Position numbers and translations under genes: made by a program. Shown here piece after piece: positions 23,992-39,800 of a DNA stretch of 64,000 nucleotides. Position 1 is the first letter of the stretch, and each line of letters starts with the position of its first letter. The DNA is taken from positions 174,964 through 238,963 of the forward strand of contig NW_021831850.1 in NCBI RefSeq assembly GCF_006345805.1, given 5' to 3'. The stretch is from Octopus sinensis (lineage: Eukaryota). The notes below the pieces were generated by a model. It did not search any database and was not told where the DNA came from. It was given only the letters and a program-made list of their open reading frames with translations.

Positions 23992-24063
23992 GGTTTCCCA
24001 AGTCTCAGAACAAGCAAGTCCAGACAGTGGCATTTACTTCAAAATATGCATCACAGCAAGTTG
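23992..24063 (+). CDS. 72-nt phase-1 micro-exon, (G)FPKSQNKQVQTVAFTSKYASQQV
   Basis: atttatttcag acceptor, GTGAGT donor at 24064, length divisible by 3, open in phase 1, shares VQT with the other micro-exons. Confidence 0.62.
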
Positions 24064-24517
24064 GTGAGTATAAAGTCACTAATTGAATTCTATCAATTTT
24101 ACCTTCACCTGAGGCATTCATGGATTAATAATAATATTAAGGAGTGATCAATAGGATAGACAAATAATTCTGGTTAGACTGGATTAACTCATTTTTGGGG
24201 CCAAAATGTGGTTTAAATCGAATAAGTAGTGCTGTCTATCGTTTGTAAATGATCAGCAGAAACAAGTGAAGTTACAAATAGCAGGAGAAATCATGCCAAA
24301 AGCTTGAAGACAATGGTACGGTAGCTTGCTGAGAGACACGTCTTGAGGCAATAGGATCAAGGCACAAACTGTGATGGAGTCAAAATCAAAACATAATCCA
24401 AAATAAATTTGGCGCTTCCAGTTTGATTTATATCTCTGTCTTGCTTATATATTCTTGAAAGTCAGTACTATTCCAGATATAATTCCTTTGCAGTAATATG
24501 TAAATGTACGTTCATAA

Positions 24518-25075
24518 ATATATATATATGCATACATTCATACATACATATATATATATATATATATATATATATATATATATATATATATATATATATA
24601 TATATATATTACGGACATGTACTTGCATAGCAAGTGACTTGATCTGAGATCGCGTGCTGGAACGAAAACAATTGCTGCGTGGAAGGTGTTTGTATGTCAT
24701 TTAAGAAACACACAAAAGCCGTTCGATTCACTTCAACATTTAAGTTTAATTTGTCAAAATATTTTCGTCGCTATAAGACCGCGACCTGTTCACTGAGAAA
24801 AATTCGTATTGTTATATATATATACATATATACATACATAAACATGTATATATATATATATATATAAACACTCACACACACACGCACACACATATATATA
24901 TATATATAATCACATGTATATATATATATATATATATATATATATATATATTATATATATATATGTAAATATACATATATATGTATATATACATGTACAT
25001 ACATCTACCTCTACATACATATACATATATACATGCACACACACATAAATATGTGTGTGTATGTGTGTGTGTGTG
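24518..25075. repeat. (TA)n/(CA)n microsatellite tracts flanking a ~200-bp insert (24611-24810)
   Basis: Direct reading of the sequence. Confidence 0.9.
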
Positions 25076-34465: not shown

Positions 34466-36893
34466 TATTGTCCTTTAGAATAGGAACTAAAAGGATTTTG
34501 TTGTTTATAGGTAAACAGGTGATTTAATGACAAAGTGTTTGTTCGTTTTACATTTTTAGTAAGCTTACTGATTGATTATTGTTGTTGGCGCTTTTGCTTA
34601 ACCAGATGTTATGGTGAAACTTGTTCTAATAGTGAACAGCCTGGTTTTTTCACTGTCATTACGTCCACTATTCAACCATTACATCTATTCAATTTTGCCT
34701 ATATTCAAGTAGAAGGCTGCTTTGCGGCTCAGACAAACTCTCTCTCTCTCTCTCTGTCTCTCTCTCTCTCTATTTCTCTCTCTCTCTTTCTCGCTCCCTT
34801 TCACTATCTTCAAGTTTTAATACAGTAAATAATATCATCCTCTCCCTTTTATCATCTGCTCTCTATGCTCCCATGTACTGGATGAGTGGTCACTGTCCAT
34901 GTCATTTCTTATTAACAGTTAACTACCCATAATGATTGCTTGAGGATTACCTCTCAATTAACCATTCCAGCTTTTTCATGGTGGTATGCCCTTCTTATCA
35001 CCAACCACTTTACAAAGGGTCCTGGGTGAATATAATTGTGGCACAAACACTACAAGAGATTGCCATGTCCTCGGCAAGATTAAACCTCCCTCTCAACCTT
35101 ACGGTGTCAACTCTCATCCAACAACCACCTCCTAGTGTGTAGTGGGAGCATTTGATCATAGCACCAGCATTAGTGAGGTTGTGTCACATTCCAAATTATT
35201 AGAAAGTTAGTCCTCACTACTCTATGATGTGTTTGTTCACTGATATGTTTAAGATGGGAGAAGAAGAGATTATAGAAGAATCGGAATGCAAAGACTAAAA
35301 GATACGAGACAATAAGGATAAAAAAAGTGATTCGAAGGAGCGGTGGAGGCTGACAACAGTAAATGATGGAGACTGAGTTACAACGGTGTGTGAGGTACCA
35401 GAGTGCTTAATTATTTATTAACATTCCTTGGTTGCTCACTCTCACTGTTTCTCTTGCCCTCCTCCTCTCACTGGGTAATCATGTATGTCTTCTACTATAA
35501 GACACATGTTTCAATCCCTCTGTCACACTCGAACCTGTCATCCTCTGGCACACGACCACCTCCAATGCTCTCCCTCTCAAAGGCTTTTTGTCTTGCAAGT
35601 TCTTTGGTGACCCCCACCAGTGCTTGTGGATCCAGATCCCACTGTAAGGTTATTGGTGTTGGGAAGAGTATCCAGCTGTAAAATCCTGCCAAATCAGACT
35701 GTGAAGCCTGGTGCATTCTTCTCCCTAGCCAGCCCCTGACAAAACGTACAAACCCTGCCAGAATGGGGAACCGAGGTTCAATAATGATAGTGGTAGTGAT
35801 GATGGTAGGTAGAGCGATGGATGCTAATTACTTGCAAATACATCAAAGTTATACAGGTTAAATTAGAAGATAGACTGACCAAATCTCAACTGAGATAATG
35901 GATAATTACAGGTTTCCGGATTGCCATAAATACTAGTAATTAATAAAAGATCACATGGGTAATTACAGGTTTATATATTTCTGTGAATATTTACATATAT
36001 ATCTGTATATTTGTAAAACACTAATTGGTATTTTAAATCAGAGCATTTAGAATTAGCCCAGCAATAAGGAAGTGGAGTGCAGAAAGTTATTGACTATAAA
36101 TTATCAATAATTATTCGTTTCCTCTACATCGGTAAAAGGCAATTTCTGTTTTGTTTATTCGAATTCTATTTACCTCATTCATTGATAGATTTGGTGTTGG
36201 GGCTAATCTAATTTTTAAGGTCTAACAAGAGGTCAGGGAGAGAGAGAGAACGAGAGAGAGAGAGAGAGAAAGAGAGAGAGATCATACATCTTACGATTGG
36301 TTGTGTAATAGCTACTCAGGCCATCTTTAATACTCACATATACACACATATATATAACAATACGCAGCTGGTCACAGCCTCCGTAAAAAACACCCAGATC
36401 TAACCCGTCAAATATTCCATTCTTTCATCTTGTTAAACATCACAGAGTTAACTTACAAAATACAGTGTTTTGTTTTGTGGGGTGGAGTGTGGTAGCAGTC
36501 GGGATGCAATAAATAATTTCCTCATTGTACAGTATGTGGTTGTACATCTGTAGACCTTCTAATATTAACCACAATTGAAGTGGTCAAGGTATACATAGCC
36601 AGATCATCACGGATATCGCTCTTCAGTAACAAACTCCGCTGGTGTATATCAGTGTTTTTAGCTTGTAACCCCACTGATGTCGCTATTTCCGTGTTTATCT
36701 ACAATAAATGAAATGGAAAGTGTCTTGAAAATGGTGTGGTAGGAATGATGTGCAATGTTTTCGTTAAATTGAGAAGATTTGATTTTTTTTGCGACTCGAA
36801 TTGCGTAGGAAGTTGCTGTTACAAATTAATATTACCCATTCATGTCTTTTGAAAATTTAATATAATTTTATTTCTGTTGTTATTGTTATTCAG

Positions 36894-39800
36894 ATGATCA
36901 CTACATGCAGATACCACGTTTTGACTGTAAAAGTATTATGAAGTCGCATCCATCCAAATTCCGTCCCCTTTGCCCAGCTGTGTCCAAAATATTGCAGCTC
37001 ACAGACTCCGATAATGATTCCAAGAACCTGGTCACAGTTTCAAGAATCGTTGAAATCCGCAATGGAATAGTAACCTATTCACCAGATTTGAAGTTAATAA
37101 GTTGTGCCACAACAGGCGGTGATTTTGATTTTCATTGTTCTTCTAATGTCACAGACATGACAAGAATTGGTGAACACACTGTTCTAGCCACAATTCCTTT
37201 CCGCAAGAAAATAGTTTTCATTAATCCATCAAGTTTCCACATAAAATCTCTGGATTATAGTTTCTTTACAATTTCTTATTTCGAACATTCTACATTTGTA
37301 GGGACTGAAATGTTTAGTAAGACAATATATCTCATAGACTGGGATAAAAATAAATTTGAAGAAAAATTTAGTGTGAAAGAAATTGTTGGAAACATAGCAG
37401 TTGGTCCACAGTATCATATCTTAATAGCCTTAGATAATATAAATAGAATTAGCTGTTACACAATAGATGGCAGACACTTGTTTCAGTTGAGGACCCATTC
37501 CATCGATATTCCAACCGACCTCACCGTATATCGAAATTATTCTTACGCTGTGCAAGGAAATGTAATTTACAAGATTTCAGCAAACGGTGCTGTGTCCCAA
37601 AGAGAAATTGGGATAAAAGCTCGATATATTTGTGTGGCAACAAATAATATTTACTTGACTGACCGTTTTGGTCTTGCACACATTATTAGGACAAATAAAG
37701 ATTTTTGGCCTCGGCTGTCTTACCATCACCAAGACCATGTCCCGAGCCTGATAAACCAAATCCATATTGATGACCCCTCCAACATTACAACGATTCTACC
37801 TATGTCAGCCTCTTCAGTAGTAATTATATATCGGGATCTAAAAGCTATATTAGTTACTGACGAAGGGCAACCGTTTGGTGGAAAATGTTTAACTTTTAAA
37901 CTCCAGCCTTCTGTTTTCTGTAGAGTGGATTCGAACACATTTCTTGTCCTTTTTAGTGAGGACAGGAAACTTCAATATATTACCTGTCCACAACTAACTG
38001 AAGGTGATTTAATAGACGTCGAAAGCAATTACATTCAAATGTGTCATATGGTATCAAATAGGAGTTTGGCTCTGACCACCAATGAAGGTAAAGTGGAGGT
38101 ACATATTTTATTGATTAAAACGGATCATGTCGACATTGTAAACAGAATTTCATTGGAACATGACAATGTCGCCATTGCTGCTACTCCAATTAATTTTGTA
38201 GTTGTAGACAGAAAGAAACTTAACTTGTTATTTTATTCAAGCTTTGGTGAGGAGCTTTCCAAGAAACACATTGAGTTCAATGGCTATCCTCATCATGTTT
38301 TCACAGACAAATTATACTTGTATGTTATCTTCAGGAGAGAGTCTTTGATGACTTGTTACAATATAATTGGACAAAGGAAATGGCAGTTGAAACTTCCTTC
38401 AAACTTTCGCTGTCACGCTGCTGTTTTCCAAGGAACAGCTTATGTGCTGGACGATCTACTCAGTCAGATTCTTCTTTACAAGTACCATGACTGGTCAGAC
38501 TGTCATGTAACCTTTCAAAACCCTTATAATAAAAATCTAAATATTCGACTCGAAGAAAAGGAGAATGACCAAGTTCTAATTGGTGAAATATGTCATCTGG
38601 CAAATGGACAGTTGGTGTTGTCCGACATATATAATGATTGTTTGCTATACATTTCCAACGAAGGGAACATTGTGTCTAGATTATCTCTGCCGTCTACAGC
38701 TACAGATATATGTCGATGGAATTATAATCAGATAGGCGTCACATTACCTCTAGAGAAGCAATTACGGGTCTTCGGAAACGTATCAAAGGCAGTTATAAGT
38801 GTATCATTAAACCAGCCTTATGTACGGGTGTGTAAGCTGGGTGAAAGTCATATTATTTGTTATTGCGATAAACCATCGCATTTAGATATTTTAAACATTA
38901 ACAATTGTAATCAAGTTCAAATAATTCATAGAATTAATATTCCTTTTGTAATGAAATCATTATCATTAGAAAATGAAACACTAAAACTATTGATTATTGG
39001 TAAGAAAGCAGTATTCTTCTACAAGATCATCAGGAGGAGGAGAAGCAGTGTTTTACCATCCCAAGTGAAAACACCCTCCAATCTCTATGGTGATGGTGGT
39101 CCTTATAGCATTGAGATGATACCCAATATTTTACTGTCGCAAGGGAAAACACAATCCAATCTCTATGGTGGACGTATTGATAAAATGTGTGTTCATTTGA
39201 TAGACAACAGCCGCATGTTTGCTGTAAATGAGCATGACTTGCTGGTGAAAGATCATGTCACAAGAAGCCAAATTAACATGTTCATCGATCTGGTAGATGT
39301 ATTTTCTAGAAACATCAGTCTCAGTGAAATGTTGTCTTCTAGATTGTATCTACAAGATCTCACAGTTTCTGATAAAGCTCATGAAGTTGTTGTTCTTCAA
39401 AGTTTTGGAGATAAACATCCAGTGGAGATTGGTTGTTTGGTTATTACAGAAAATAACCTGGTTGCTTTATATGACAGCACAAATCAAAACATTAAGATAT
39501 TAACTTTTGATGGTCAGCTTGTTGACTCTATCAAGTTAAATGTTGTCCCTAGACATATGTGTTGCTGGCGATCAAACACATTGGTTATAACGACCAATAA
39601 CTATCAACTTCTGACATTAAAAGTGGAATTTCCACTGATCTTGGCAACTTACCACACGGAAAATAGATACAATTGTATCGCTTGTCGATCCGACAATCTA
39701 CTGGTGTGTAGCAGTAGCAGTAGTAGTAGTAGTAGTAGTAGTAGTAGTAGTAGTAGTAGTAGTAGTAGTAGTAGTAGTAGTAGTAGTAGTAGTAGTAGCA

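Follow-up and report, generated by a model that had tools for sequence, protein, structure and literature searches.

Inherited linker micro-exons and a truncated giant exon in a probable chimeric, defunct gene copy of Octopus sinensis

Introduction

Symmetric exons encoding disordered segments are a general pattern of gene architecture (Schad et al. 2013, PMC3632108), and in Schistosoma the micro-exon genes (MEGs) code for secreted proteins that consist almost wholly of micro-exons (PMC10526429). In this study, we describe a chain of four such micro-exons, followed by a giant single-exon open reading frame (ORF), in a window of 64,000 nucleotides (nt) from Octopus sinensis (assembly GCF_006345805.1, contig NW_021831850.1, positions 174,964 to 238,963 of the forward strand; positions given without a contig count from the first letter of this window). 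A first-pass annotation, made from the letters alone, had taken the micro-exons for a hidden array of duplicated exons, each coding for one binding motif of LC8/DYNLL and spliced onto a giant propeller exon, and had suggested that their duplication or skipping would tune dimerisation.

The motif in question is short and loosely defined. The LC8 consensus asks for D or S at -4, K at -3, any residue at -2, T, V or I at -1, Q at 0, T or V at +1 and D or E at +2 (PMC3078936), the glutamine at 0 being its most conserved position (PMC6607443). Asp at -4 and a strand-breaking P, D or E at +2 are favourable, whereas strongly concentrated charge counts against a site, and many peptides that contain the anchor (TQT) fail to bind (Jespersen et al., PMC6607443).

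Our reading of the locus, to which we give a probability of about 0.75, is that the segment 23992-41766 belongs to a young chimeric gene copy, of which it holds the 3' part; this copy is composed of inherited linker cassettes and a 5'-truncated giant exon, and is probably defunct.

Results

Anatomy of the micro-exon chain

The four micro-exons lie on the forward strand. Exon A (23992-24063) has 72 nt, encodes GFPKSQNKQVQTVAFTSKYASQQV and matches an nhmmer profile of the cassette and its flanks with an E-value (E) of 1.7e-22, while cassettes B (25779-25829, VSSMIVDNEVQTEVEPV), C (32502-32552, again VSSMIVDNEVQTEVEPV) and D (33670-33720, VTLTLVDNEVQTEVEPA) have 51 nt each. Read directly, all four are preceded by tttcAG acceptors and followed by donors in which the last exonic G runs into GTGAGTATAAA. 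As all lengths are multiples of three and each exon ends on a single G that opens the next codon, every micro-exon is of phase 1-1; this frame is open in the cassettes, and both other frames contain stops. The giant exon is entered at 36893/36894, where the acceptor ttattcAG is followed by ATGATCAC, and the terminal G of an upstream exon completes its first codon to give D-D-H-Y-M-Q. The exon sizes of 72, 51, 51 and 51 nt, the GTGAGT donors, the phases, the acceptor at 36893 and the spliced peptide running into DDHYMQIP had all been proposed in the first-pass annotation, and our reading of the sites and the frame bears them out. The only in-frame ATG of the chain is found in cassette B.

Exon A is a cassette homologue enlarged by a 21-nt insertion and corresponds in type to the parental 72-nt '...QQV' exons described below. 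Cassettes B, C and D sit within duplicated units of ~600-700 nt that include their intron flanks, so that the proposed origin by exon duplication holds, the repeated unit being exon plus intron. B and C differ by one synonymous change and by 11% in their flanks; D is of an older type, with flanks ~27-32% diverged from those of B and C. Apart from A to D, the profile finds in the window one dead copy and one remnant. The dead fifth cassette (32852-32905, forward strand, E 2.1e-21) reads VNLKLEGK(stop)VQTMVAEPV, with an in-frame TAA and its donor GT changed to AT; it had been overlooked before, as had a frameshift in the giant exon to which we return. The remnant (20658-20709, forward strand, E 5.4e-7) retains part of the downstream flank only.

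A parental linker between RING and Death domain

The origin of the cassettes is revealed by their relatives. Searched against the genome, cassette B with its flanks hits at least 40 places, and the distant matches (70-75% identity, E 1e-20 to 1e-12, reaching into introns) consist of 51-nt phase-1 exons in arrays, in which a spacing of 166 nt is frequent. The parental peptides include VCPKFEEKAVQTVAESV, VCPRCREKAVKTVVESF, VNRTFEVKETQTLAEPV and VRPKFKEKASQRVAEPV, and are followed by 72-nt exons ending in ...QQV. The last 72-nt exon on scaffold C27 (ETPKLEEKCLQDVAKLLGVDWQQV) combines with the next exon into a Pfam Death domain (E 8.5e-9), and ankyrin-repeat and RING exons lie upstream of the array. 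This ankyrin-RING module has dozens of genomic copies, several of them with cassettes a few kilobases downstream, and the parental cassettes are located between the RING and the Death-domain exons, on the gene strand. The relationship extends well beyond the exons: by blastn, 20-36 kb of the window is homologous to C27, C11230 and C4534 at 64-74%, introns included (for example, a block of 1092 nt at 68%), and this long intronic homology marks the window array as a diverged paralogue of the family's linker rather than as a new invention. The idea of a hidden array particular to this gene must therefore be abandoned, as what is found here is the standard linker of a large and already automatically annotated family, whose genes carry names such as 'E3 ubiquitin-protein ligase MIB2-like' or 'ankyrin-3-like'. 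In this family, the isoforms of LOC115225502 (366, 349, 332, 332, 325, 315 and 315 residues) differ by whole cassettes in various combinations.

In the AlphaFold2 (AF2) model of P0047, a protein of the parent family, the Death domain is predicted with a local distance difference test score (pLDDT) of 75-94, and the cassette linker with 21-31 and without secondary structure; it is from this parental value of 21-31 that the disorder of the spliced peptide of the window is judged. Many parental cassettes (on C27 and other contigs; proteins P0046-P0063) carry a CPxC pair, as in VCPRCREK and VCPKCEEK, which is lost in the window and which might indicate that the parental linker takes part in metal or redox chemistry, rather than being a simple spacer. 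A literature search gave no description of either octopus family, that of the cassettes or that of the giant propeller exon. The N-terminal 80 residues of the spliced product had no match in a database of 5.8e9 proteins, a search that, with so large a database, is insensitive to matches of 17-25 residues and is not evidence.

These relatives also bear on a sceptical view, in which the micro-exons would be nothing but chance open frames flanked by chance AG and GT in AT-rich intronic repeat DNA. With at least 40 genomic occurrences, the unit might be mistaken for a dispersed repeat, and the window is rich in transposable elements, but every intact copy keeps splice sites and frame, the copy that bears a stop has also lost its donor, multiple RefSeq protein models include the cassettes, singly and in tandem, and the copies are without exception flanked by RING and Death-domain exons of the same strand. 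We thus consider chance to be very improbable. The proposal that the cassette unit is itself a transposable element was rejected, because its copies are confined to the interval between RING and Death-domain or giant exons, share the strand of the gene and retain both frame and splice sites.

Six chimeric loci

The same acceptor and micro-exons, with the splice sites of the latter intact throughout, are present at five further loci: C9449 and C12623, with two cassettes each, C8846 and its exact duplicate C10426, with one, and C9206, with three. Exon A is kept at C9449, C12623 and C9206. The comparison of exon numbers, here carried out among paralogues, therefore gives a cassette count that varies from 1 to 3, and the recurrence of the chain at five paralogous loci, together with junctions in RefSeq models, establishes the symmetric cassette exons as genuine. 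The six copies are close to each other, with nucleotide identities of 95-99% in the giant exon and 91-95% in the introns. Their cassettes come in three N-terminal flavours (ETPAL, [VD]SSM[LI] and VTLTL) that precede a near-invariant core, VDNEVQTEVEP, in which the paralogues show two non-synonymous changes, Q>E in the only cassette of C8846/C10426 and E>K in C9206.

Public gene models contain the very junctions proposed for the window. XP_029655252.1 and XP_029656593.1 read ...DSSMLVDNEVETEVEPV joined to DDHYMQIP, and XP_036355110.1 reads MLVDNEVQTEVEPV, then VTLTLVDNKVQTEVEPV, then DDHYMQIP; its sister isoform XP_036355111.1, from the same gene (LOC118761373), equals it minus exactly the second cassette. 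The chain from cassette to giant exon and the skipping of a single cassette are therefore already present in public paralogue models, and the skipping that had been envisaged for the window finds its counterpart in this isoform pair, as in those of LOC115225502.

Octopus vulgaris models link ankyrin-RING exons to DDHYMQIP, and a genome-wide RING search placed a RING exon of the paralogue C9449 on the strand of exon A, 13 kb upstream of it; tblastn for ankyrin, RING and Death-domain-end exons gave no matches at the six loci. XP_029655252.1 has its first coding exon (C8846:260446-260547) 28 kb upstream of the cassette, within a dispersed repeat of which the genome holds at least 150 copies, and so at least some transcripts of the subfamily start in transposon-derived exons. 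The O. vulgaris model P0002 was tried as a guide to upstream exons and rejected: by tblastn its N-terminus, the first exon, maps to window positions 28346-28628, inside the retroelement of the B-C intron, and the model is unreliable because its C-terminal residues come from a 171-nt satellite.

The frame of the giant exon is shortened in other copies as well, with only C12623 retaining 1628 residues, and the ratio of non-synonymous to synonymous substitution rates among the copies is 0.3-1.1 (501 codons). In C9206 the cassettes are intact though the giant exon is broken in frame. This locus had been considered as an old pseudogene (81% amino acid identity, 11 stops), a view rejected on its nucleotide identity of 96-98%, small indels being what breaks the frame.

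The giant exon

In the window, the giant exon occupies 36894-41158 on the forward strand, where it begins with the phase-1 acceptor and constitutes a 5'-truncated member of its family. The long ORF in which it lies (36866-41158, 1430 residues) is 99% identical to a predicted protein of O. vulgaris and 97% identical to RefSeq proteins of O. sinensis. A deletion of 7 bp between 41150 and 41151, seen by comparison with C8846, disrupts its frame, so that translation stops at 41158 (stop codon 41156-41158) and the conserved C-terminal 206 residues are stranded. These are still found out of frame at 41146-41766, on the same strand, up to the terminal ...FYYER and its stop (95% over 206 residues by tblastn with the C-terminus of P0004). 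Within the exon, a coding (AGT)n microsatellite for poly-Ser (39710-39823, forward strand) has 38 units here and 23-29 in the paralogues.

The family to which the exon belongs has at least 100 genomic copies, mostly uninterrupted frames of ~1800 residues, many of them on one scaffold (e.g., C30). A search of 1.84e9 protein cluster representatives gave only 26 matches, by which the family is essentially restricted to octopus. Its intronless members possess an N-terminal domain of ~170 residues; none of the six subfamily loci has it, and the phase-1 acceptor takes its position there. This domain is helical and has no assigned fold, and a Pfam search of it in the giant-family paralogues gave nothing useful.

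The first-pass description of the exon as a propeller one is upheld by structure prediction and not by Pfam, which gave no match to the giant ORF at E<0.01. Nor did a sequence-profile search of the PDB return a significant relative (the NHL domain of TRIM71 had E 0.89), and phmmer gave two weak matches, to TRIM-like proteins with NHL-type propellers (E 3e-5). An AlphaFold (AF2) model of the first 935 residues of the giant ORF, built on 27 paralogues, is all-beta, with regular strands of 5-6 residues; its mean pLDDT is 63 and its predicted template modelling score (pTM) 0.35, with pLDDT rising to 75-89 at residues 50-270 and the first 45 residues of low confidence. The top Foldseek matches of this model are tandem beta-propellers, namely IFT-A, LRP4/LRP2, DDB1, Trm734 and Utp21 (E 1e-21 to 1e-15). 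We regard 'giant multi-propeller exon' as a reasonable description, and tandem beta-propellers as a prediction of medium confidence.

Origin and state of the window copy

Taken together, these data are most simply read as a fusion of the 5' part of an ankyrin-RING-cassette gene with a truncated giant exon. The 51- and 72-nt phase 1-1 cassettes would have been inherited, introns included, from the family with the order ankyrin, RING, (17-residue cassette)n and split Death domain, and would multiply through tandem duplication of exon-plus-intron units. In the six-locus subfamily, the Death-domain exon would then have been replaced by the 5'-truncated giant ORF, which may have been accepted by virtue of its compatible phase-1 acceptor; this order of events is the one that we find most plausible. 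The VQT motif would be the inherited K-A-V-Q-T-V of the parental cassette. As the cassettes are symmetric, single ones can be included or skipped with no change of frame, and each would thus set the length and composition of a linker predicted to be disordered.

In the case of the window copy, two observations make it probably defunct: the 7-bp frameshift, and the lack of ankyrin and RING exons on its contig. In C8321:155000-238963, that is, over 44 kb upstream and 22 kb downstream, tblastn found no ankyrin, RING or Death-domain-end exon, and among the matches listed in the genome-wide RING search none is on C8321. The copy is probably a non-functional partial duplicate in decay, duplicated so recently (introns ~5% diverged) that its cassettes have stayed intact.

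Several points weigh against this reading and are gathered here. The lack of a RING exon upstream of C8321:155000 rests on the genome search, among the matches listed, and contig C8321 ends where the window ends, so that a Death-domain exon further downstream is possible. An error of assembly is conceivable as the source of the 7-bp frameshift, but it is unlikely because the 7 bp were lost in non-repetitive sequence. The use of the exons in the window copy, which may be transcribed, is inferred from its paralogues and from automated gene models; isoform models of Gnomon generally derive from RNA sequencing alignments. Finally, synonymous changes are in excess in the cassette core, which is also less diverged than the introns, and this hints at a constraint on the peptide that a pure spacer would not require.

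Constraint on the cassette core

Between B/C and D, divergence amounts to 27-32% in the flanking introns, 16-18% in the exon and 12% in the 33-nt core (Fisher P 0.046 and 0.017), and all four differences in the core are synonymous (P ~0.002-0.006). The core had earlier been described as differing by synonymous changes alone, which holds within the window, with one such change between B and C and four between B/C and D, but not among the paralogues, and when their two non-synonymous changes are added the probability of at least 4 synonymous changes out of 6 becomes ~0.02-0.05. These figures are suggestive of a constraint at the peptide level, although the signal is thin and entangled with gene conversion. 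In this regard, 8 of the 12 nt in the first four codons differ between cassettes 1 and 2 of C9206 (ETPAL and VSSML), whose introns are only 2.4% different; since the first codons outpace the introns, and since ETPAL resembles the ETPKL start of the parental 72-nt exons, this hypervariability suggests patchy gene conversion from other members of the family.

It could be argued that the peptide has no function at all, the core being kept by purine-rich exonic splicing enhancers, which would define the 51-nt exons, and by gene conversion, with the residues serving as a neutral acidic spacer. The core is indeed GA-rich (GACAATGAAGTTCAAACAGAAGTAGAACCAG), and conversion is implied by mosaics such as cassette 1 of C12623, which combines type-1 flanks with type-2 synonymous variants, as well as by the contrast in C9206 between cassettes 8/12 nt apart and introns at 2.4%. 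Exon and intron divergence are only modestly different (0.16-0.18 and 0.27-0.32), and the cassettes of C9206 are as intact as any despite the broken frame of its giant exon. An enhancer, however, should resist synonymous change equally, and all four core changes between the two types are synonymous, including GAA>GAG within purine runs; in addition, K8, E15 and P3 are conserved in the protein throughout the family, which points to some constraint on the peptide. For these reasons, we find a complete lack of peptide-level function somewhat unlikely.

The LC8 motif

The anchor, T, V or I followed by Q and then T or V, is present as VQT in A, B, C and D. B to D have D at -4, E at +2, N at -3 and four acidic residues in or near the motif; A has K at -3, N at -4 and V at +2. 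In the functional proposal, each cassette would be a working LC8/DYNLL site in a disordered linker, and the number of cassettes would tune the valency of LC8 dimers and the dimerisation of the propeller protein or of the RING-Death-domain protein. At the level of a pattern, VDNEVQTE agrees with five of the six specified consensus positions (D-4, V-1, Q0, T+1 and E+2), exon A supplies K-3 (NKQVQT), and the five-position pattern would arise by chance in a 17-mer at ~1.4e-4. The repeated motif must be read as one ancestral occurrence and not four, because the cassettes are paralogous copies.

Several points speak for the proposal: VKETQTL, a textbook site, occurs in some parental cassettes, no cassette position is better conserved than K at -3 (34 of the 37 sampled), the parental linker is predicted to be disordered, the core evolves mostly by synonymous change, and the genome has many Dynein_light genes, such as the DYNLL ORF at C25:12066054-12066305. 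The 17-residue period leaves linkers of ~9 residues, a spacing between motifs similar to that of Nup159 and ASCIZ. Against this, the anchor appears in only 10 of the 37 sampled parental cassettes, which divide into 25 with Q and 12 with K at position 0, and of which 23 have T and 11 have A at position +1. The close paralogues C8846/C10426 have replaced Q by E (VET) in their sole cassette, and the window copy is probably no working gene. In B to D, moreover, K or R is missing at -3 and four acidic residues crowd the motif region, a situation flagged as unfavourable by Jespersen et al. (PMC6607443). We therefore judge LC8 binding by these cassettes, for which there is a match at the level of a regular expression, to be unlikely. 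A narrower version, in which a subset with K-x-[TV]-Q-T (VKETQTL, KAVQTV, NKQVQTE and possibly DNEVQTE) would be genuine LC8/DYNLL sites and the cassettes with Q>K or T>A non-binding spacers between them, seems to us equally doubtful.

Other features of the window

The B-C intron contains an (AAT)n microsatellite of ~50 units at 26106-26305, a duplicated block of ~446 nt at 26450-27354, and, at 27881-31205 on the forward strand, a retroelement with reverse-transcriptase ORFs (Pfam RVT_1, E 6e-17). Further RVT_1/zf-RVT retroelement fragments lie at 280-2235, 8295-18548 and 56411-57652 (reverse strand). The satellite, with a period of 171 nt, occupies 47581-50680 in 18 copies of 95% identity, and a polypyrimidine tract of ~3.9 kb at 51212-55066 (93% C+T, degenerate (TCTT)n) produces long spurious ORFs in all three forward frames.

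Discussion

We class the window locus as a member, probably defunct, of a derived chimeric subfamily; RefSeq models already include this subfamily, as they do the skipping of its cassettes. The locus documents a lineage-specific chimera in which the splice-modular linker of an expanded RING/Death-domain family was apparently captured onto an orphan and massively expanded propeller family, and thus a tidy case of exon-phase-compatible gene fusion and of turnover in cassette number among very young paralogues. From a methodological point of view, the micro-exons illustrate that reading raw sequence can recover exons overlooked by ORF scans.

If the LC8 proposal were true, LC8 valency would be adjusted one exon at a time through alternative splicing and tandem duplication, as a modular tuning of dimerisation in signalling E3 ligases, and if binding held for the parent family such exon-by-exon valency would be of interest to the fields of linear motifs and cephalopod genomics. 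The multivalent LC8/DYNLL clients ASCIZ, Nup159, GKAP and KANK1 share with the cassettes the tandem 8-mers around [TVI]-Q-T, predicted disorder and short regular spacing. Among the homologous octopus cassettes, whose binding is putative, the anchors are not conserved. We know of no layout with one motif per cassette exon in ASCIZ, Nup159, GKAP or KANK1.

On the side of the giant exon, the comparison is with beta-propeller repeat proteins. By its model of medium confidence, the exon is predicted to form, like them, repeated four-stranded antiparallel blades that close into toroids; it has no match to a curated repeat family such as WD40, NHL, YWTD or Kelch.

The closest systems are found in the same genome. 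LOC115225502 and its relatives have, like the window, 51- and 72-nt phase 1-1 exons with tttcAG acceptors and a final G before GTGAGT, and tandem duplication of exon-plus-intron units is common to both; their consensus is xxPKxEEKAVQTVAExV, with the VQT of the window at the homologous position. The N-terminal half of the window cassette has, however, diverged (VSSMIVDNE instead of VCPKSEEKA, with C, P and K lost), and exon A has lost the LGxxW signature of the parental 72-nt exon for helix 1. The parental introns measure 115 nt, whereas those of the window subfamily run to kilobases, and the parental array ends in a Death-domain exon where the subfamily has the giant propeller exon instead. 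With respect to the family that joins ankyrin repeats, RING, cassettes and Death domain, the window locus is therefore devoid of both the upstream ankyrin/RING exons and the terminal Death domain. LOC118761373, LOC115228948 and LOC115230592, also of O. sinensis, are closer still, with the same acceptor, the DDHYMQIP start, the cassette types and the splicing of cassette to giant exon, and LOC118761373 adds an isoform difference of one cassette. They differ in having 3, 1 and 1 cassettes against 4 in the window, and in their lesions; two of them have first coding exons that are derived from transposable elements or otherwise unrelated, and one has VET in place of VQT.

Beyond the octopus, the PEVK exons of titin are a comparable array of symmetric exons for a disordered linker, although not homologous to the cassettes. 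The general pattern of Schad et al. (PMC3632108) and the Schistosoma MEGs (PMC10526429) share with the cassettes short, phase-symmetric exons of a multiple of three nucleotides, tandem duplication and exon skipping. The octopus array differs from the MEGs (PMC10526429), to which it has no homology, in that it links folded domains. A symmetric-exon array that encodes a disordered linker and changes by duplication and skipping is thus a known design, with no new mechanism, here seen in a linker whose parental form joins a RING to a Death domain and whose derived form leads into a predicted giant propeller.

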